Below, in pieces: positions 2,843 through 13,344 of a DNA stretch of 64,000 bases. A program made the position numbers and the translations under genes. The notes beneath the pieces were generated by a model, which saw only the letters and a program-made list of their open reading frames with translations, ran no database searches and was not told where the DNA came from. Numbering within the stretch: position 1 is the first letter of the stretch; the number at the start of each line of letters is the position of its first letter. Source of the stretch: Paraphysomonas bandaiensis (Eukaryota > Protista > Chrysophyceae). Location of the stretch: assembly GCA_965644295.1 (NCBI GenBank), contig CBFFRP010000440.1, positions 1 through 64,000 on the forward strand. Reading direction: 5' to 3'.

Positions 2843-4073
2843 TCTCTGATTGCATACGTCGATGTCGTGAGCTGATGAGTTGTGTGATGGGCTGCACTGT
2901 GAGCTCATGGAGTGGTGGGTCACATCAGTATATATCCAGTGACAAAGAGAGCCAGTTGATGAAGCTATTGAGAAGCTGCTCTCACTGTACACAGCACTCC
3001 ACTCTCTGATAGAGAGCCTCTCAAAGGAGGCCTTTAGAAGTGTGTATGTAACGAGCGAATCGATGAAACCGCAGAGTCAGAGAGAGTCTGCTTACTTCAT
3101 AATCTGAACCCGACCGCTACTTTGAATCTGGCGGTCAGTCGTGTGTGAACGAACGAGAAACGCATATCAAAGAAACTGATTTCTACTCGCAACTGTTTCA
3201 TCGAGTCACGTGTATGTGTTCAGTTCTGGTGTGTCTGCTTCAGAACAACTCTCCGCTAAGGGCAAGCCCACCTTTTCATTTTACTGTATCACTGAAGGCT
3301 GAAGGAACCATACAATGCGCTCCCAGTATCAAATGTAGTACGGTGGACTTAGACCTCTCTACTATATGCGATAAATCCGCTTAGTCTAAGTTAGGATATT
3401 TAAGAGCGGAGTTTCTTACTGGCTGAATTACGAACAAGAAGGGGCTATTATCCAAACTCATTTTGATTCTAAGAAAAGAAATATCTGTGTTGTTGATAAT
3501 TATGTTTTCTCTGCATATTCTAGTTTGCGCTTTTCCCGAGCCAATTAATGACCCATGATTCTCAATATTTTCGAGTAAATATAATAACTGTAATATTTAA
3601 TATTTCGTAAAATTCGATTATTTTTTCGTAGACAATTCATATCTTGTAAAGACACGAAATGGGTCAAAATATAGGGGACGCAAGTTCAGGACTAATGCTT
3701 GTTGATATCACTGTTTTCAAAGTCAGATATTAGTGTAGTTATAAATGCTTTAAAATATCTAATAAGTCGTCAGTACTTAGATAGAAGTAAAATGTAACCT
3801 GATTGAGTTTAGAATTACTCAAAAGAACTTTAGTAAGTAGGGGTAGAGTAGACAAGTTTACTTGGGTCACGTCACAGTTCTAAACGAAAGTGATACCGAC
3901 TAACTAGTCATGGGTTAGATAATTATGAATTACTAGTAGTGAATGTCTGATTATTTAGCAATAGGCGTTGAGACCTTGCATCAATTAGTGGCTAGAAGAA
4001 TGCTAGTCATACTAGTTAGACCACTACCCGTAACTAATCAATACAAACTCTTTTATCCTACTATTTAACGCTA

Positions 4074-4122
4074 CGAAAGCTGCTTGTGCGTCGCCGCAAG
4101 CACCAAGGTGCAACCACTTCCG
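4074..4122 (-). ncRNA. Conserved structured 3'-UTR RNA element of the LINE family
   Basis: CGGAAGTGGTTGCACCTTGGTGCTTGCGGCGACGCACAAGCAGCTTTCG: a basal stem plus two hairpins, one with a GNRA loop. Homologues at 22255-22299, 25285-25333, 28785-28833, 45677-45724 and 46640-46688. Confidence 0.7.
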
Positions 4123-4169
4123 TTCTTTTTGTGTGATATGAAATTCGCCTTTATCGTGTGTCCGTGGAC

Positions 4170-7100
4170 TCACCGGCGCTTTTGATCTGGGGGTCTCCCT
4201 TTGGGATGGGTCTCCATTGGTTTTGGAGGGGGCTCAGCATTCTGAATTAGGGTCCTGAGTGCACCTAGTTCCAGATGTGTGGGTTGGGAGTGGTGGGGAT
4301 TGTTGGGAGGAGGAGTTGGGTTTGTAGTATGTGTTACTGTGCTCCTGTGGGGCCGCGGGTGTAGATAGAGTTGTCGAAGCCGTCGGCGTTGTGGAGGTCT
4401 GGGCAGTCCAGTGCTCTGTCGGGTAGGACCTGTGAGGTGTGCACGTGTGTCTGGAGTCGGATACGCTGTGGGGGGTCTTCGTTGGACCCCTAGTAGTCGA
4501 AGGACTCTCGGACGTTGTCTTGACTGACTGCGTTTCGGACGGGGTCTCGGGAGTAGCCTGGGCGGCCTTTTGGACATGGTGATATAGCGACAACCGCGAT
4601 CCTGTAACATAAGCTTCGCTGCAGTGTAAAGCGGTTGCAGGAGATTAATAACCACTGTTTCTAGGTTCCGTAGACTGTGAGCCGTCAGGTGGTTGTGTAT
4701 GTCATCTCCGAAGACCGTTTCCAGTTGGGCTGCTGTGATGGTTCCAGTCCAGTATCTCTCGACCTGTGGGATGGAGGGATTCCAGGCTCTGCTGGAGAGT
4801 CTCCGTAGTGCAGATGTGATCCAGTTGGGTAAGTTCTGAGTTCTCTGTATTTCGTGTAGCACATTTTTATGCGATTGAAATGCAGTTTCCCTTATTTGGG
4901 TGATGGATTCATGTGTGCAGTCGAGGCACATATGTTTTAGGGAATCTAGTCGAAACCCGCAGTCAGAGCATGCGGCTTTGGTCAGGTCAAGCCCCTGTTT
5001 GGTTTTGGCCCGGTTCCTCCCTATGCAGAAAGATTTGTCCCATGTCAGTGCCGTGTTGAGAATTCTTTGGCGTAGATTTGAGCTGAGTTTGTCTTTGGAT
5101 GCACTGCCATCCGCTTGAGCTAGTTTGCGCGGGAGGTGTACTCCGCTATTGGTCCAGTAGCCAGGCGCTCGATCAGGATTGTTTCCGTAGCGTTGATCTC
5201 TGGTTGAAGTGTAGTTCTCAAGTGTCCTTAGGTCGCAGAGATCTTGGAAATCAGTAAGGAGTGGGCTAGAGTAGTATGGCCGTCTTGTACTGTGCAAACG
5301 CCAGTGCCATAATCCAGCGGTTAGTAAGCGTTCAATGGCACTGTCAATCGCAATTGTACAGACAGTGTAGTTATTTTTTCCAAGGATGCGATCGACTTCA
5401 TGCCAGTCTTCACCCGCGACTGCGTCCGCAATATAGATGCCCTTGTCCTCAAACGTCCACTCCGTTTCATCTGTGGTACGTCGTTCGGGATGGGACCTCA
5501 CCCAGGTCACCTGTCGTTTGCAATCTCTACTGGCCGCGATGCTTTCGAGTAGTACCCCTTTTGCACGGTGACCGAGAGCTCTGCGTCTTGTGGAGAGTGC
5601 TTCCTCAGTACGGGTGCACACTGCCTGACAGTCTGTGTGGCTTCTTATGTGTTCGGGAATGCGTGTTGAGAGTATAAGCCCCATGGCTGTGCCTATGAGT
5701 TCATATGCGTATGAGTCCAAACCTGGCACATCACGAAAGGGTGTATCTAGTCGTAGTATTATGGTTGTACCATCTTCCCAGGCATTTTCTGGGGGTAAGT
5801 AGACGACCGCTGCACCTCCTCGGTGTGTCCATCGTGTTCGCGGATTGACATGAGTGAGGCGACGCGTGGAGAGCGCACTGGCTGTGTATGATCCATCTGT
5901 GAAGATTGCCTTGAAAGTATCTGGTTGGACGCTATTAAGGCCGAGTTCTTGTTTTAGATTGGTCAGCATGTGTTCATCCTGTGGTTCGGGGGGCTCAGGT
6001 TGCTGAAGGGTAAGGCCCAATTCCGTTCCCCATTCCCTGAGGCTGAGAACATAGTGGTGGTATTGGGGCTGTGGCTCTGTTGTCTGAGTGAGTAGAAAAT
6101 GTGCTGCTTGACCTGCTTCTCCCCCGAGGGTTATTGCGCGCTGTAGAGATCCCCATTTTTGCTCCTGCGCCGAGTCTGAGAAACGTTTCATACCTAATCC
6201 GTTGTGCTTGAGTGAGAGGTAGATCAGTTCCGTGGGGTATCCAGGGCCTAGACTGAGGGCCTTTCTGTAGAGGGTTGCGCAAGCAGCGTCAATTTCTCTG
6301 TACCAGTGTAGCGGCCATGAAGCTTTGGTGGCTCTATAGAGCAAAGTCGGTATGATTTGGGTCTCGATAACCATGACTTTACAGCCGGCTGAGGCCTGTT
6401 TAATCCCTAGGTGTGTGGTCACGACTTTCAGGTATTTTAGACACCAATCATGGGAGGCCTTGTCTGTGATTGTGAGAGGAAGGTCTGCTCCGAGGTAATG
6501 TATCGACTCTAGTGATGTTTGGATAGGGACTGGGTGTGGACGCCACGACCAGTCGTAGAGAATGATGTAGCCAATGGGGTCGGAGGACTTGTTGGAATCT
6601 TGTAGGATCGGAAACACTGTGCAAACTACTTTGGGGATAGAGAGTTCCATTCCCGAAAGTACGCAGAACGCAGATATTTGTTGGGCAATGAGTTGGGCAG
6701 CGTGTATGGATTTAGCTATTGTGTTAAGATCATCCGCGAAGGAGATCTTTATTTCGCCGGTAGTCGGAGTCGTGAGTTGAATAGTTGGTAACGTTGGACT
6801 CGTTGTTGACAGTTCAATGTCCAGCCACGTGAGAAGGATGTCGTAGAGTGCCACCCAGGCGCATGTGGATTCTGTGCCCCCTTGGGTGATACCCCTTTCG
6901 GCTTCGAAACCCAGACTGAATAGTGCAATGAAGTGGCCGTCTGCGGACAGGAGGTCAAGGAGAGAACGTGGCTCTATGTTGTTTGCCATGAATGGTGTCC
7001 AGGGAAATGTTAGACCGCCGGCATCTAAGTTGCCAAACCAGTCAACTACATCGTCCGGAACGCCCAGTCGTGCCCACGCGAGACGCATGAGGTTAGGCGC

Positions 7101-10100
7101 AATTGAGTCGAAGGCCTTCTTGAAGTCCCAGAGTGTACATATATGCTGGTCGCCTTTTCGTCTTGCTTCTTCTGCAGCCGCGAGTACCCTTAGTATCGCT
7201 GTGTCCGTCCCGTTCCTCCAGCGATAACCATGCTGGGACGGATGCAAAACTTTCTGTTCCTCCCATACGGTAAGAATTCTATGAGTGATTATCCTTGTTA
7301 ATATTTTCCTACTGACTTCAAGCAGACCAATCGGTCGGAGATTAGTGAGGGAGGATTCTCCTGGTTTCTTGAGAATGGGAGACATTACCCTGTCTCTCCA
7401 CCAAATGGGCACATGTTTATGTTTCCAGAGAGATCTGGTGAGGATGTAAGCCTCTCGCTGAACTACCGGTGGCCAGGATTTGACCATGTTGGAGGAGACC
7501 ATTGAGGGTCCAGGCGCGCGGTTGAAGGAGAGAGAGTGAAGTGTGCAGTAGAATTCATCCTGGGTGATGTCTTTTGCAAGAGTAGATTTGAGTGTGGCTG
7601 CCATGGCCGGAGTGGTCTTGGTACAAAGGGCCCGTCGTAACCCCAGTTGCAGGGGAAGAGGGATTTTCGAGCGGGGGTGGAGTGGTTCCTGGCATGTCGC
7701 TGAGCCCGGATCAAGAAGGGATTTCCACCATGTAGGGTCATCCTGGAGCTGTTGTGCTACAGGGTCAAGTCCAGGAGGTTTGGCATGATGTTCACGGAAG
7801 TGCGCATTAATGCCTTCATGAATGTCTTGCGGTGTTGTGAGGATGTGTCCGTCAGTTGTTTTCACCGTGGTAAGTCGGAGTGGTGTTTTGACCTTGAGAC
7901 CAATTTTCTGAAGAATTGCTTGAAGTCTTTTCTGCTGTAGCAGTGCCTCCATCTGATTGGTGCGAGCCGTGAGTCTAGTCCGCATTTCTGTCCTGGCTCT
8001 TCCATGAAGAAGTCCTCTCAGTCGCAAGGCAATTCGGAGAAGGTTTTTCTTGGTGGCTTGCTTTTCGTTCCAACCCAGGATTACTCGTGGGTCCGCGTTG
8101 CGATGGCTGCACCAGAAGTTGATGTCTGATATGCCTTTGATGTGACCCTGAGAACTCCTGAGATAGGAGTCCCATCGGATGAACCATGCAGTGATGATTT
8201 CGTGGGTGGGGGTGGTTGCCGGGGGGCCGCGCCATCCATGCCGTTTGTATCCGGCAGAATTGAACATCTTTTGGATAATCCGCAAAACCATGATCATTCC
8301 TTCCTGTATTACTCTCATTTCCGGGGAAAAGCCATTCTTGAACTTTGAGCGTTTGCGCTGACAACGTTCGTGTAGTCGTGTGCTATAAGTACATGCAGGA
8401 CGCTTCGCTTCAAGCGAAGCCTGGAGGGTTATGTGATGGATGGCCGCTAGTCTGTTGGCTGCCACCTCAGGAGGGAGTATGGCAGACGATCCGTTGTCTA
8501 AATGTGGTAGTTGTGCATGAAGTTGGAGGAGTCTTGCGGTGTATGCCTGTACTTCCTTGGAGTCCTTCGGGTTTACATTGAGACGGGGGGGGATTCGGAG
8601 GTGCGACTCAGGTGGTCGAGGGTCAAGATTGACTGGTACAGTGAAACCGACCCAGACCGGTCGATGATCGAAGGCTGCTGCGAGTAGTGAGGGGGAGTCA
8701 AGGCAGCCAGTGTCCGTAACAGACATGTTCGGAAGTAACGGCGTGTGTAGAATATGATCGATCCGCGATATTCCTTTGTCTAATCTGTGGAAGGTATGAT
8801 ATGTTTTCCTGGGTAGGAGAAGCTCATGGAGTGGTGCAGCCAGTTGGAGTTTGTCGGCAAGTGGTCGTATGTCTCTGCCTTTCGGATTTGTCTCCATGGA
8901 GCCATTGAAGTCGCCGGCGACAATGACAGTATGGTCCTTGGCTCTGGCTTTAGTGACCCATTTCGTAAGGATGTTGCATAGGAGCTTGTAGGGGTCAGCA
9001 GTACAGATACCACGGGACGCTCTCCCTAGCTTGGTCAATTTGCTCCATAATGTGCAAGAGCCTGGCGTGGATGGCTTCGGGGGTAGATAGACGCTTATTA
9101 GTACTAGGGTGTGCGCCACCGACGTTTTGAACTCTAGTCGGCTCACTAAACCAAGTCCCGTAAAGTCAGCCTTTGTGAAGGCGAGACGGCGCTTCCAGTA
9201 TTCGCTGATTATGACTACTGTACCCCCCATTAGTGGGTCTCTTGAAGTCAGTTTTGGCTGCTTGCTGAGGAAGAGGCATATTCTTGATCCCTGGATTGCA
9301 TCTTCTATGATACGTGTGAAGAAGTTGGCCTGAGTTTCTGTTAGACGGACATCCTGTAATAGGAGCACGTCCAATTTTTGCCGCTTAAAGTGTCGGATGA
9401 TAGCTTGGACTTTGCCTGTGTGAGATGCCGGATTGCCATTTGTGTTCCATGTGGAGAGTCGGAGTCCCATGGCTGCTCCCGAGGGAGCCTTGGGGATGCT
9501 GCTGGAGGTCTCTGTAGGAGTTCCACTCTTGTCTGCAAGGAGTCTGTCCCATACTGCTTTATTGGCACCGCCTATGTCGCTGTCGTACGCAGCCCTGGCT
9601 TGGATTAATATCTCAAGTGGCCAGCGTTGATCACACCAGTAATGATGCCCGTAGTTGATGAGAAGTTCTTCATCCTTAGCAATGGGACGTATTGTACGGA
9701 CATAGAGGCGTTTATTTTTCGTGACAAACTTGACATTAGCCATGTTTGTGGCTAGGGGGTCATTAATATACCCAGCTTCGCATGTTACACATTGTCGGAC
9801 TTGGTCAAAGCCATCTATTGCGAAGGTACCAGTACTGTCTTGAACTATGTAATCAGAACGCCTTGCAGACTGACTCAGCTTTGTTAGTGGATAGCGTTTG
9901 CCTTTGTACTCAGCAATGATGACGTCTGCTGGGAATGTGTTCTTCGCATAAAGGGATAGTCCTTTGGCAGTGTTATCGGCGTACGCAATGTAGAACTTTC
10001 TTGACCAGTCCTTGTCCCAGCTGGTGGTATCAAGTGCTGGAGTTGGTCTGATCGTTCGTGTGGTCGTGGATTGGTGTGAGTTGTGAAGGTTCGTTGGTTG

Positions 10101-13100
10101 GTCACTTTCATCGTAATTTACGACCTTTTTGGCTTTCCGGGTTGGCTGGCATCGACTTGTCAACGCAGTTTGGGCGTGTTTCAACTGCATCTTCTTGTGC
10201 GATGGTAGTGCTCCAGGGGTTGAAGCCTGCAGAATCTGTCGATTTGTTCGTGCTAACTTGGTGCTGCTGGACGAGGTTGTTCTGGTGCTGGTCGTCTTTG
10301 ATGTCCTATTGTTGTTCGTGATTGAGTCCGCGGGAAGTGTAGGTGGAGCGATGGGGTCAGACGTTGAGAGTATACTGGTGGCCAAGGTGTTTTCAAGAGA
10401 TAGTAGGGCGTTGTCTAGGGCAGTAGAAAGACCGGCAGGGTCTAAGAGGAAGTAGTGAGCATCTTGTAGTATGACATGGTAGTAGTTATCACGAATAGCG
10501 TTCCTAAGTTCCTCCACCTTCCATGCGATGTTATAAGCTACTTTGTCAGTAGGGATGCCTACAATGCTGAGATAATTACCATTTTGCGCCCACGTCGTGC
10601 AGGGGTTGATAGTAGAGGCTAAAAGGTGGACCTCTCGCACTGAGAGCCAGTGAGTTATGTCGTCCTCCGTAGTGTATGTTGTTTTGGCAGGTATTAAAAG
10701 TGCGGCCTGTGCGTGATCCAACTTATGTCGTAGTGGCTGAAGTGTGTGATGGGCCATGCACTCCCGTTGCATTGTGTCGAACGCTTGGGTGCCTAATGTA
10801 TTTATAAAAGATGCTAGCGTGTGACGGTCCTTGCGTTGTTTGAGGTCTAATTTCAGACAGGAGCGAGTGTGTCGCCTGCTTGAAGCAAGAATGTGCAGAT
10901 GATAGAGTGTACTGTATGCGCAGTATCCATCACTTGGGATATGTTGTTGTGTGCGAAGGGCTGAGGGTCTGAGGGTGAGGCGATAGACTCTGCTCATGTC
11001 GCACATATGGAGCCTGAGTTGTCGACGGTCCGTGGGGTTCATCTGCCGTAGTTGACGTCGAGCTCTCAGTGACAAGGAGACTGCAATTACTTCCCTCTGT
11101 TCCTGTTGCTCTCTTTGCTCATGTAGCATAGATGGTACAGTTGACGGTTCAGAAGTCCAGATGATGTTGGTGCTCTGTCTGGAGGTCTGGTGTTGTAGAA
11201 AACAGGATAGCCGCTCCTGAGTTCGTGTTAGAGCGTGCATGATGGAGGTGGGGATATTTGTTGCATTTAGTATGTGAAACCCATGCTGGCTGCGTATGAT
11301 GTCATGGGTTACCACAGTGTTGGTAGAAGCGTGCACTGTTAGTGCCTGTCTGGAGAATGGTGATAGCTGTGCCCAACCAGGCGCCAGGTGCGGTTGACCA
11401 GCGTCCCATAGTCTGCATGGTATGGAGAGAAGATCGAGTAGCAGTTGGAAATCCTCCGTGTCTAGATGTAGTCCTGTGTGTGGATTCGAGGATTCATATT
11501 GCATAAGTGTCTTACGGAGAGTGACAGTGGCTGTTGAGGGAATACCCTTTGTCAGGCAAAGGGTCCGCACATGCCTAGATACAACATGAGTGGAGTCTGC
11601 CCAGGGTTTGTTGCCATTCGCGAGATGCTGGGCAACTAGTAGGGCGCTGTGCGTGGTGTCCAATTTGTGCTCTGGTAGCGTGAATGATATCATGAGATCA
11701 TAGTTGTCCGTCCTGGAAGCCTTGGCTATGAATCCTTCCCATATGTCTAAACAGGCAGGGGATAGCATGTGTGCGTATATTTCTTTTAAAAGGTTTCCCT
11801 GTGGGGAGGCAGCAATAGTTTGGGTTTCATCATATCTAACCCAGTTGTTCAGCAGATCGGAGTGAAAGGGCGTGTGACCCCGGCCCTCTGTGTAGTGTAG
11901 GGGGTATGTGGCAATATCCTTGGGCAGTACATCCGGCCTGAGGTCAGGAGTGGTAGTGGAGAGTGAGGATGGGCCGTCTGGGGCTAATGCTGGAGTTCCC
12001 ATGGTGTTCAGTTGAGTAAGGTTGGTGGTAGGTGGCTTCCGTTTGACTGGGAAATAGTCAAATAACGTTGCATACGGTGTGGTGGCATCCTTAGTGGGTA
12101 AGGGTAATGTGTGGGTGGATTTGCTAGGTCCGTCACCGCTGTTATCGGAGGAGAATTCCTTCCCCTGAAGGGCGTGGGAGGGATGGTTGATGGACCTGGC
12201 ACGGTGGACTCCTTGCATTCCCTTGGAATGACATTGCAACACATTTTGGAGACGCATGATGACGAGGTCAGGAATTCTCTCGAGTAGCGCGTGTAGTTCC
12301 AACTCCACCGGGTATTTGGTGTCCAGGAAGAAGTGATCGTTGGAGCAAAACACATCATAAGATGGAAGGAATTGAGTTTGTGGAAGGAAGGAGGAATAGT
12401 GGGTGGACCAGTACGCCCAGTAAGGGAGAGGCGATAGTTTGTCTGGGGGTTTTCTAGGAGGAGGTAGAGTGTACTGTGTGTGTGTATGACACTGCAGTGG
12501 TGTTATGAGTGTGTTGGACAGTGAGAGAGAGCTGGTGATGTGTCCAACAGTACAGGTAGACAGGTACATGGACATGGTGATGTGTCCAACAGTACAGGTA
12601 GACAGGTACATGGACATGGTGATGTGTCCAACAGCAGTAGAGGTATACACGGAATGGTATACATCCTGTAGGACACAGTAGTACAGTAGTCGAGTATACC
12701 GTATGCGGAATACAGTGTCTATCCAATGAGATGGATGGGCTGTGGGGGTGATAGGTGAACAGGGTGAGGGGGTAGCCTGCTGGGTGCATAGACCACAGAC
12801 AAACCATGTTGGGTTGGGTTGAGTGGGCGGCAGAAGGCAGCCCTGTTGCACAGTTGAGAGGGATCGAGAGTATTCAGTGATTGCATAGGGGGTCCATGGG
12901 GGTCGTTTTCGTGAGCCTGCTCGCACGAGCCATGTTCTGAGAGGTTGTAGCCGTAGAAAGCGATGGGTGAGACGAAGTTGTCTGCTGAGGGGATAGCACG
13001 TAGGTGCGGTCAGCGCTGCATTGGTGCAGGCACGTGGTTTAACTGAAGTAGTTGAGTAGGGTGAAGGTTGCAAGGCCAGGCAGGGGGGCTTGGAGCGTGT

Positions 13101-13220
13101 ACAACATGGTGTGACAGGTAATTTGTCAGAAGCGTGGTGGTCAACAAAATGCAGCAGTAAGGGAGTGTAAAAGGCCCTGGGCACACTGATGTGACTCAGC
13201 CACAGTCTCAATAGAGACAT
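4170..13220 (-). CDS. LINE polyprotein: OTU-like protease motif, SET, AP endonuclease, reverse transcriptase, RNase H, CCHC finger (3016 aa)
   Basis: OTU-like IPSDGYCAYS (~10940) and QDAHYFLL (~10457). SET KGLSLYA/IIAEYKG/GYINDP/EELLINYGHHYW (9636-9970). APE TWNTNG/SVYLPP/AGDFNG/RIDHIL/DHRPV (8640-9465). RT APGPS/LRPIGLL/QHGYR/DFKKAFDS/GITQG/FADD/YLG (6480-7530). RNase H IFTDGS/YELIG/TDCQ/WVRSH/ADAVA (5400-5910). CSDC..HMCLDC (~4915-4972). Confidence 0.95.
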   Translation of the reverse strand: MSLLRLWLSHISVPRAFYTPLLLHFVDHHASDKLPVTPCCTRSKPPCLALQPSPYSTTSVKPRACTNAALTAPTCYPLSRQLRLTHRFLRLQPLRTWLVRAGSRKRPPWTPYAITEYSRSLSTVQQGCLLPPTQPNPTWFVCGLCTQQATPSPCSPITPTAHPSHWIDTVFRIRYTRLLYYCVLQDVYHSVYTSTAVGHITMSMYLSTCTVGHITMSMYLSTCTVGHITSSLSLSNTLITPLQCHTHTQYTLPPPRKPPDKLSPLPYWAYWSTHYSSFLPQTQFLPSYDVFCSNDHFFLDTKYPVELELHALLERIPDLVIMRLQNVLQCHSKGMQGVHRARSINHPSHALQGKEFSSDNSGDGPSKSTHTLPLPTKDATTPYATLFDYFPVKRKPPTTNLTQLNTMGTPALAPDGPSSLSTTTPDLRPDVLPKDIATYPLHYTEGRGHTPFHSDLLNNWVRYDETQTIAASPQGNLLKEIYAHMLSPACLDIWEGFIAKASRTDNYDLMISFTLPEHKLDTTHSALLVAQHLANGNKPWADSTHVVSRHVRTLCLTKGIPSTATVTLRKTLMQYESSNPHTGLHLDTEDFQLLLDLLSIPCRLWDAGQPHLAPGWAQLSPFSRQALTVHASTNTVVTHDIIRSQHGFHILNATNIPTSIMHALTRTQERLSCFLQHQTSRQSTNIIWTSEPSTVPSMLHEQREQQEQREVIAVSLSLRARRQLRQMNPTDRRQLRLHMCDMSRVYRLTLRPSALRTQQHIPSDGYCAYSTLYHLHILASSRRHTRSCLKLDLKQRKDRHTLASFINTLGTQAFDTMQRECMAHHTLQPLRHKLDHAQAALLIPAKTTYTTEDDITHWLSVREVHLLASTINPCTTWAQNGNYLSIVGIPTDKVAYNIAWKVEELRNAIRDNYYHVILQDAHYFLLDPAGLSTALDNALLSLENTLATSILSTSDPIAPPTLPADSITNNNRTSKTTSTRTTSSSSTKLARTNRQILQASTPGALPSHKKMQLKHAQTALTSRCQPTRKAKKVVNYDESDQPTNLHNSHQSTTTRTIRPTPALDTTSWDKDWSRKFYIAYADNTAKGLSLYAKNTFPADVIIAEYKGKRYPLTKLSQSARRSDYIVQDSTGTFAIDGFDQVRQCVTCEAGYINDPLATNMANVKFVTKNKRLYVRTIRPIAKDEELLINYGHHYWCDQRWPLEILIQARAAYDSDIGGANKAVWDRLLADKSGTPTETSSSIPKAPSGAAMGLRLSTWNTNGNPASHTGKVQAIIRHFKRQKLDVLLLQDVRLTETQANFFTRIIEDAIQGSRICLFLSKQPKLTSRDPLMGGTVVIISEYWKRRLAFTKADFTGLGLVSRLEFKTSVAHTLVLISVYLPPKPSTPGSCTLWSKLTKLGRASRGICTADPYKLLCNILTKWVTKARAKDHTVIVAGDFNGSMETNPKGRDIRPLADKLQLAAPLHELLLPRKTYHTFHRLDKGISRIDHILHTPLLPNMSVTDTGCLDSPSLLAAAFDHRPVWVGFTVPVNLDPRPPESHLRIPPRLNVNPKDSKEVQAYTARLLQLHAQLPHLDNGSSAILPPEVAANRLAAIHHITLQASLEAKRPACTYSTRLHERCQRKRSKFKNGFSPEMRVIQEGMIMVLRIIQKMFNSAGYKRHGWRGPPATTPTHEIITAWFIRWDSYLRSSQGHIKGISDINFWCSHRNADPRVILGWNEKQATKKNLLRIALRLRGLLHGRARTEMRTRLTARTNQMEALLQQKRLQAILQKIGLKVKTPLRLTTVKTTDGHILTTPQDIHEGINAHFREHHAKPPGLDPVAQQLQDDPTWWKSLLDPGSATCQEPLHPRSKIPLPLQLGLRRALCTKTTPAMAATLKSTLAKDITQDEFYCTLHSLSFNRAPGPSMVSSNMVKSWPPVVQREAYILTRSLWKHKHVPIWWRDRVMSPILKKPGESSLTNLRPIGLLEVSRKILTRIITHRILTVWEEQKVLHPSQHGYRWRNGTDTAILRVLAAAEEARRKGDQHICTLWDFKKAFDSIAPNLMRLAWARLGVPDDVVDWFGNLDAGGLTFPWTPFMANNIEPRSLLDLLSADGHFIALFSLGFEAERGITQGGTESTCAWVALYDILLTWLDIELSTTSPTLPTIQLTTPTTGEIKISFADDLNTIAKSIHAAQLIAQQISAFCVLSGMELSIPKVVCTVFPILQDSNKSSDPIGYIILYDWSWRPHPVPIQTSLESIHYLGADLPLTITDKASHDWCLKYLKVVTTHLGIKQASAGCKVMVIETQIIPTLLYRATKASWPLHWYREIDAACATLYRKALSLGPGYPTELIYLSLKHNGLGMKRFSDSAQEQKWGSLQRAITLGGEAGQAAHFLLTQTTEPQPQYHHYVLSLREWGTELGLTLQQPEPPEPQDEHMLTNLKQELGLNSVQPDTFKAIFTDGSYTASALSTRRLTHVNPRTRWTHRGGAAVVYLPPENAWEDGTTIILRLDTPFRDVPGLDSYAYELIGTAMGLILSTRIPEHIRSHTDCQAVCTRTEEALSTRRRALGHRAKGVLLESIAASRDCKRQVTWVRSHPERRTTDETEWTFEDKGIYIADAVAGEDWHEVDRILGKNNYTVCTIAIDSAIERLLTAGLWHWRLHSTRRPYYSSPLLTDFQDLCDLRTLENYTSTRDQRYGNNPDRAPGYWTNSGVHLPRKLAQADGSASKDKLSSNLRQRILNTALTWDKSFCIGRNRAKTKQGLDLTKAACSDCGFRLDSLKHMCLDCTHESITQIRETAFQSHKNVLHEIQRTQNLPNWITSALRRLSSRAWNPSIPQVERYWTGTITAAQLETVFGDDIHNHLTAHSLRNLETVVINLLQPLYTAAKLMLQDRGCRYITMSKRPPRLLPRPRPKRSQSRQRPRVLRLLGVQRRPPTAYPTPDTRAHLTGPTRQSTGLPRPPQRRRLRQLYLHPRPHRSTVTHTTNPTPPPNNPHHSQPTHLELGALRTLIQNAEPPPKPMETHPKGRPPDQKRR
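12533..12633. repeat. In-frame 42-bp tandem repeat within the LINE ORF (about 2.4 copies)
   Basis: tggtgatgtgtccaacagtacaggtagacaggtacatggaca is repeated and encodes TCTVGHITMSMYLS. Confidence 0.9.
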
Positions 13221-13344
13221 TGGGCTTGGAGCTGGTTAATAGAGTGAAACTTTATGTTGGACTGTATTTGCCATCGTAGGGCAGAGAATTTTTATGAATT
13301 ACTAACAAGCATTAAAGCATAGAGCTCTATATAATATTTTCTAA

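Follow-up and report, generated by a model that had tools for sequence, protein, structure and literature searches.

In the genome of Paraphysomonas bandaiensis, an active long interspersed nuclear element (LINE) encodes a polyprotein of which a SET domain forms an integral part, maintained by selection; this domain lies directly upstream of the AP endonuclease (APE), which in turn precedes the reverse transcriptase (RT). The element is located in positions 1-64,000 of contig CBFFRP010000440.1 (assembly GCA_965644295.1); this whole stretch of 64,000 nt is called the window throughout, and the features of the element are listed in Table 1. A SET profile hit, a modelled fold and sequence conservation among diverged copies all point the same way, which places the assignment far beyond chance: on profile and model evidence, the element has a genuine module of the SET lysine-methyltransferase fold.

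Identity and fold of the SET module

A sequence-only reading of this DNA had described four SET motifs in frame within an intact LINE open reading frame (ORF), about 55 aa before the APE, in a compact form with the catalytic Tyr conserved and without pre-SET or post-SET Cys clusters. All of this holds. The four motifs were found at window positions 9636-9965 on the minus strand, within an ORF of 3016 aa, at aa 1086-1107 (9900-9965), 1149-1155 (9756-9776), 1162-1165 (9726-9737) and 1172-1195 (9636-9707); neither kind of Cys cluster is present in the window SET; and the first APE motif, GLRLSTWNTNGN, begins at aa 1252, 56 aa past W1195. Aligned to MLL3/4 and to vSET of PBCV-1, the window 'GLSLYA' takes the place of the canonical 'GLGLYA' (GxG), 'EYKG' that of 'EYIG', 'YINDPLATN' that of 'YINHSCAPN' (NHS) and 'EELLINY' that of 'EEL..DY', while 'YGHHYW' aligns with 'YGDDYW' of vSET. 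The catalytic-type residue, Y1190 of 'EELLINY', aligns with the EL..Y tyrosine of MLL3/4 and, together with N1153, N1162, Y1194 and W1195, is unchanged across 25 sequences that are only 22-65% identical.

The profile search and the structure prediction that the same reading had suggested as checks both bear the assignment out. Pfam SET (PF00856) matches the window ORF at E 1.3e-8 and 35.7 bits (curated cut-off 22.4) over positions 1-105 of its 105, and is significant also in the three other LINE lineages of this genome (B, C and D, described below). With a profile built from 25 family members, E values between 1e-11 and 2e-8 are reached for solved SET enzymes that include KMT2C/D, LegAS4, PRDM12, SETD7, EZH2 and PBCV-1 vSET, the last of these at 1.9e-8. 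An AlphaFold (AF2) model of aa 1060-1225, with a mean predicted local distance difference test score (pLDDT) of 87.5 and a predicted template modelling score of 0.83, has the SET beta fold. Compared by Foldseek against the PDB, this model matches SET7/9 first (E 1.5e-8, probability 1.0, TM-score by query 0.66), followed by PRDM1/3, MLL3/4, LegAS4 and SETD8, all with probability 1.0; there are 368 PDB matches at E<=0.001, and the best among the matches listed are all SET or PR domains.

Judged from alignments, the module is larger than Pfam SET, at about 200 aa: the SET core is preceded by a basic lead-in and followed by a helical tail. At the end of the lead-in, some 45 aa before the core, stands the motif N-Y-(D/N)-E, which is kept also in related LINEs carrying SET after the RT. 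The tail, with a pattern of roughly 'YW..WPLEIL..A..AY......W..L', fills most of the gap between SET and APE, leaving a true linker of only about 20 aa. In a second AF2 model spanning aa 1015-1250 (pLDDT 77) the tail helices are confident and the basic lead-in is poorly defined.

Table 1. Features of the SET-bearing LINE in the window (positions in nt of the window; aa numbering of the polyprotein)
Feature	Position	Strand	Evidence or remark
Target-site duplication, 3' side of LINE, 13 bp	3923..3935		identical 13-mer at 13292-13304
Full-length LINE (non-LTR retrotransposon), ~9.36 kb	3936..13291	-	bounded by target-site duplication; single ORF with APE and RT
Single polyprotein ORF, 3016 aa	4170..13220	-	translation, no stop codons
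C-terminal Cys/His (CCHC-type) motif, aa 2751-2768	4917..4970	-	read from translation
Reverse transcriptase (RVT_1, PF00078), aa 1951-2244	6489..7370	-	Pfam, E 1.1e-14
AP endonuclease (Exo_endo_phos, PF03372), aa 1257-1494	8739..9452	-	Pfam, E 2.4e-9
Helical tail after SET, aa 1194-1231, in place of post-SET region	9528..9641	-	alignments; AF2 helices, pLDDT ~88-91
Subfamily-invariant residues N1153, N1162, Y1190, Y1194, W1195	9636..9764	-	alignment of 25 sequences
SET domain (PF00856), aa 1087-1191	9648..9962	-	Pfam; same placement by whole-genome scan; AF2; Foldseek
Basic stretch and N-Y-D-E motif upstream of SET, aa 1025-1040	10101..10148	-	conserved in lineages A-D and environmental relatives
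OTU-like catalytic-Cys motif 'DGYC', aa 761-774	10899..10940	-	putative; weak evidence only
Target-site duplication, 5' side of LINE, 13 bp	13292..13304		identical 13-mer at 3923-3935

The element and its copies

The window LINE is a real, young, multi-copy and active element. Its APE and RT follow one another in one ORF, its 5'-truncated copies are dispersed, and the 13-bp direct repeat at its borders is a target-site duplication of the type that target-primed reverse transcription leaves behind. The element lacks a poly(A) tail. The closest solved RT to that of the window LINE is human L1 ORF2p. A search of the organism's own genome (62.6 Mb in 669 contigs) returned 99 hits for the SET region and 106 for the APE, dispersed over many contigs. 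Many of the APE matches start within the domain and continue into long downstream ORFs, and therefore represent 5'-truncated copies. Among 30 copies of the window LINE examined, 12 are 100% identical over 606 nt, which indicates recent amplification, and the same SET-APE junction is present in about 28 near-identical copies on different contigs.

Sequence near-identical to the window LINE also occurs in marine metatranscriptome runs, both poly(A) and random-primed, of several studies. Contigs at least 99% identical to it cover parts of the SET region in two RNA runs, X9 (9948-10156) and X12 (9716-9978), and in a third, X14, such a contig lies beside SET, in the SET-APE linker (9288-9437); in a 2015 run of unclear type, contigs of the same identity extend across the whole 5-kb stretch. 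These are assembled contigs from libraries that can hold DNA, from which a single transcript is not provable, and they give a hint of expression of the window LINE. In the 5' part of the ORF (window 11508-12500), the depth of RNA-library contigs is 10-30 times that of the rest, and three runs, each from a different study, have the same loose-end sequences at 11550, 12118 and 12422; some other abundant transcript or repeat may contain this segment too.

Constraint on SET across four lineages

Four LINE lineages of this type are present in the genome: A, to which the window element belongs; B, which is 64% identical to it overall; and C and D, at 38-44%. SET, APE and RT follow in this order in all four. 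For A and B, the nonsynonymous divergence (dN) of SET, APE and RT amounts to 0.216, 0.185 and 0.183, respectively, and that of the linkers on either side of SET to 0.62 and 0.42; between C and D the corresponding values are 0.182, 0.155 and 0.104 for the domains and 0.45 and 0.43 for the linkers; and between A and C they are 0.457, 0.487 and 0.419, with 1.0 and 0.79 for the linkers. The dN of SET is comparable to that of APE and RT and 2-3 times below that of its linkers. We rely on relative dN because synonymous sites are saturated between the lineages: only relative dN is robust, and values of omega, such as 0.067 for SET between C and D, are rough. SET is as constrained as APE and RT and under purifying selection. 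The sequence-only reading had named absence or neutral decay of SET in sister copies as grounds for refutation; all four lineages keep it, at a dN like that of the two core domains, and none shows such decay. Moreover, every traced APE homologue of the genome that is free of 5' truncation carries SET directly upstream, and no intact lineage lacking SET was found among them.

LINEs can acquire host sequence by template switching, and the SET might on that account be a neutral passenger, either a host exon captured by chance or a chimaera of the assembly. This reading is effectively excluded. The domain keeps the same position in four lineages as divergent as these and in four environmental proteins, the constraint upon it equals that on APE and RT, and its junction with APE recurs in the near-identical copies on different contigs described above. 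There is also no close host paralogue in the genome, which rules out recent capture from the host: the best non-LINE matches to the window SET there have about 31% identity (E 1e-13) and lie in Ty3/Gypsy Pol, whereas the ordinary host SET genes are much more distant from the LINE SET than are those of Gypsy elements.

Two further arrangements were seen in lineage C. Three SET-plus-APE segments of this lineage at C505:58045-63515 are spaced exactly 2178 bp apart and constitute a tandemly repeated internal fragment of the LINE. In addition, lineage C has a second SET upstream, at L032:1666-2037 (C644:3665-4036), whose nearest relatives, at 28-29% identity, are small multi-copy SET ORFs of 171-266 aa (C599, C70, C378, C645, C589). 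These small ORFs come in pairs on the same strand, with 6-8 kb between the two members, an arrangement that would be expected if each of the two long terminal repeats (LTRs) of one element held such a gene.

SET in Gypsy elements and in relatives outside the genome

In Ty3/Gypsy Pol proteins of the same genome, SET is located between RNase H and integrase (L035:3217-9057, minus strand; L036:3907-6255, plus strand; L038:3013-6531, minus strand; L039:2-5143, minus strand). In a tree of 144 SET domains (148 columns), the LINE SETs of the genome form one clade (SH-aLRT 99), and SET therefore predates the split of lineages A-D; the Gypsy SETs form another clade (97). This tree does not resolve the relation of the LINE clade to the Gypsy clade or to environmental SET-APE proteins, and because these deep branches are unresolved, we treat exchange of SET between element classes, and likewise a single origin, as possible only.

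A further family of SET-bearing frames of identical length (1526 aa) is present in at least seven copies (C119:140077, C123:82391, C201:5582, C210:190558, C252:2148, C432:239162 and C191:26067), with an eighth, shorter frame on C207. This family is probably another SET-bearing mobile element.

Outside the genome, an exhaustive phmmer search of the window SET against 1.84 billion representative proteins gave 236 matches at E<=1e-3, of which 19 reached E<=1e-10 and the closest was 39% identical; with so few matches, the window SET belongs to a rare subgroup. The SET-APE junction itself recurs in four environmental proteins (P0001, P0009, P0100 and P0162), of which P0001 is 31% identical over 394 aa across SET and APE, and P0162, at 49% identity, has an RT gene downstream on its 8.8-kb metagenome contig. 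Two further proteins, P0025 and P0050, have an APE-RT region homologous to that of the window LINE (E 1e-63) and carry the same extended SET module after the RT. P0025 (3923 aa, environmental contig L063) is ordered RNase H, APE, RT, SET, OTU, Ulp1, and P0050 (3532 aa, environmental contig L064) RNase H, APE, RT, OTU, SET, Ulp1; the OTU and Ulp1 proteases of both are Pfam-verified, and the APE of P0050, for which Pfam lists none, was assigned by homology to the window APE. Both are giant LINEs of the same clade as the window LINE, with SET at a different position. A related LINE, P0163, lacks SET. A scan of JGI metagenome contigs returned no relative, and the ESM Atlas only generic small SET proteins.

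The same subgroup of SET is joined to Ulp1 (C48) in the environmental proteins P0077, P0083 and P0099 and to a RickCE-like peptidase in P0133; P0051 is likewise among the SET fusions with Ulp1, RickCE-like or C15 peptidases. In P0103 (environmental contig L069), SET follows the integrase of a Gypsy Pol, the position that the chromodomain occupies in chromoviruses. Its presence at two positions in LINEs and at two in Gypsy Pol, and beside OTU or Ulp1, speaks for an accessory kit that is used repeatedly and against a single capture event. We raise, tentatively and as a proposal that is possible but by no means probable, that protist LINEs and Ty3/Gypsy elements share a portable chromatin-effector kit: a rare SET subfamily (IND for INH, with a YG..YW tail), usually found beside OTU or Ulp1-type proteases resembling deubiquitinases and deSUMOylases, which would have moved between element classes and polyprotein positions and would rewrite histone marks at the insertion site or on the element's own copies. 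By analogy, and with the same reserve, such a kit might be the transposon counterpart of viral vSET and of the SET effectors of Legionella. The repeated company of OTU and Ulp1 invites the conjecture of a combined kit that alters ubiquitin or SUMO as well as lysine methylation, and that would be similar to the effector sets of intracellular bacteria (PMC3417536).

Is the SET domain an active enzyme?

We lean moderately towards the window SET being an active lysine methyltransferase that acts where the LINE meets chromatin, or on the element's own proteins. The translated polyprotein would carry an S-adenosylmethionine-dependent methyltransferase to the site in chromatin that the endonuclease nicks; the targets of SET there would be lysines, either on histone tails or on proteins belonging to the LINE's own ribonucleoprotein; and this methylation would shift the local state of chromatin or protein in the element's favour. 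The identity of the domain, its fold, position, copy number, constraint and recurrence are established, whereas catalysis, substrate and benefit are inferred. If the reading is true, some retrotransposons actively set lysine marks, whether where they integrate, on other copies of themselves or on the proteins that they encode.

Several points weigh against it, in addition to the saturated synonymous sites and the assembled nature of the RNA contigs described above. The His of the NHS motif is replaced by Asp (D1154, giving IND) in at least 90% of the SET subfamily, the preceding Asn being kept, and in SUV39H1 the equivalent change of His to Leu abolishes activity; catalysis of the window SET can therefore not be assumed. 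In the LINEs of this genome, Ser or Ala takes the place of the second Gly of GxG (G-L-S or G-N-A). Both the substrate of the window SET and any effect on chromatin are hypothetical.

The same two substitutions, the one family-wide and the other a degeneration of GxG, would suit a SET fold that has been kept as a non-catalytic binding module, either a reader of lysines or histone tails or a surface for protein docking, by means of which the endonuclease would be anchored to chromatin or a host factor. Its mode of action would be closer to that of the chromoviral chromodomain than to catalysis. Placement directly before the APE is apt for such targeting. The PR-domain model PRDM2_PR, moreover, matches the window SET with 21 bits, below its own cut-off of 27, and the SET of lineage C with 40.8 bits, and many PR domains are inactive. 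However, the invariant residues (the NHS Asn, the EL..Y Tyr and the YW pair) are those that in active SETs form the lining of the cofactor pocket and of the lysine channel; a pure binding module has no need of pocket residues, and their invariance therefore counts against it. Active SET/PR enzymes without the NH motif also exist, PRDM9 among them. On balance we regard a purely non-catalytic role as unlikely.

An active enzyme need not act on histones. The best structural matches are to SET7/9, which methylates many non-histone proteins, and a conserved basic lead-in accompanies SET in every architecture; the substrate might then be the element's own polyprotein or ribonucleoprotein, for example the basic 'TRKAKK' segment 60 aa upstream, or a host restriction or repair factor. 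In the AF2 model of aa 1015-1250, R1028-K1029 form a two-residue beta bridge, a substrate-like pairing with SET. The 'TRKAKK' segment itself has a pLDDT of about 50 and its Lys is not conserved in lineage C, which makes it a weak candidate for a pseudo-substrate, one that we set aside. By sequence, moreover, the histone enzymes MLL3/4, EZH2 and vSET are just as similar to the window SET. A dedicated non-histone substrate we consider improbable, to about the degree that we do the binding module. Whichever its target, as a putative active methyltransferase the SET-LINE is a concrete, testable system for chromatin manipulation by a mobile element, and the family offers compact, Zn-free SET domains for biochemistry.

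Precedents and related systems

Transposons are usually described as targets of histone methylation by the host, and the exceptions of which we know carry readers (chromodomains), not writers. Among these are the chromoviruses, Ty3/Gypsy elements with an integrase chromodomain in Pol that is thought to guide or condition integration. They resemble the window LINE in being retrotransposons with a chromatin-related domain, but they are LTR elements and their chromodomain reads methyl-lysine, whereas SET is a writer fold. Accessory domains in LINEs are themselves familiar: Dualen has an OTU-like protease, and L1 elements of plants and oomycetes have RNase H, so that in these, as in the window element, an APE-RT core and acquired enzymatic domains share one polyprotein. 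To our knowledge, and in the literature that we searched, none of them carries SET. The sequence-only reading had not known SET as a standard domain of APE-type elements, and a full-text literature search, whose coverage excluded many subscription papers and Repbase reports, likewise returned no description of SET in a non-LTR retrotransposon.

The nearest precedent for SET in a mobile element is the proto-Helentron of the stramenopile Phytophthora infestans, which carries a SET-domain ORF (Thomas et al. 2014, Mob DNA 5:18, PMC4067079). Helentrons also carry ORFs for OTU-like cysteine proteases and an APE endonuclease (PMC4067079), so that SET, OTU and APE are all three represented. The proto-Helentron differs in being a rolling-circle DNA transposon, with a small SET ORF of its own that is described as a captured gene resembling Clr4 (PMC4067079), and not with a SET fused in frame to the APE-RT of a retrotransposon.

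Three other systems share one side or another of the arrangement. The vSET protein of PBCV-1 (A612L, a viral H3K27 methyltransferase; PDB 1n3j) is likewise a minimal SET without Zn clusters that is encoded by a genetic parasite, but this protein of a DNA virus, 119 aa long, stands on its own and is no closer to the window SET than MLL3/4 or SETD7. SETMAR (Metnase), which the sequence-only reading had cited, does join SET to a transposon-derived nuclease in one polypeptide. The comparison is only a loose one, because SETMAR is a fusion gene of the primate host, present in a single copy and formed when a host SET gene took up a dead mariner transposase, and not a domain of an active element; the window element is multi-copy and recently amplified, with an RT and a target-site duplication. 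Legionella LegAS4/RomA and other bacterial SET effectors are SET enzymes used by an intracellular parasite to rewrite host chromatin, and LegAS4 is among the best profile and fold matches. They differ in being secreted bacterial proteins that keep the NHS motif, and kinship is known at the level of the SET superfamily only. Intracellular bacteria with SET effectors also deploy OTU and Ulp1 peptidases (PMC3417536).

Other parts of the polyprotein

Only SET, Exo_endo_phos and RVT_1 exceed the curated Pfam cut-offs in the window ORF, and Pfam finds no domain in aa 1-1059. The putative OTU-like motif of the window, 'DGYC', aligns pairwise with 'DGNC' of the Pfam-verified OTU in P0050, weakly (E 0.009). 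RNase H in the window LINE is unsupported by Pfam, by PDB searches and by comparison with the Pfam-verified RNase H of P0025. Near the N-terminus (window ~12500-12640, ORF aa ~195-240), a peptide of about 15 aa, VGHITMSMYLSTCT, is repeated in tandem two and a half times.

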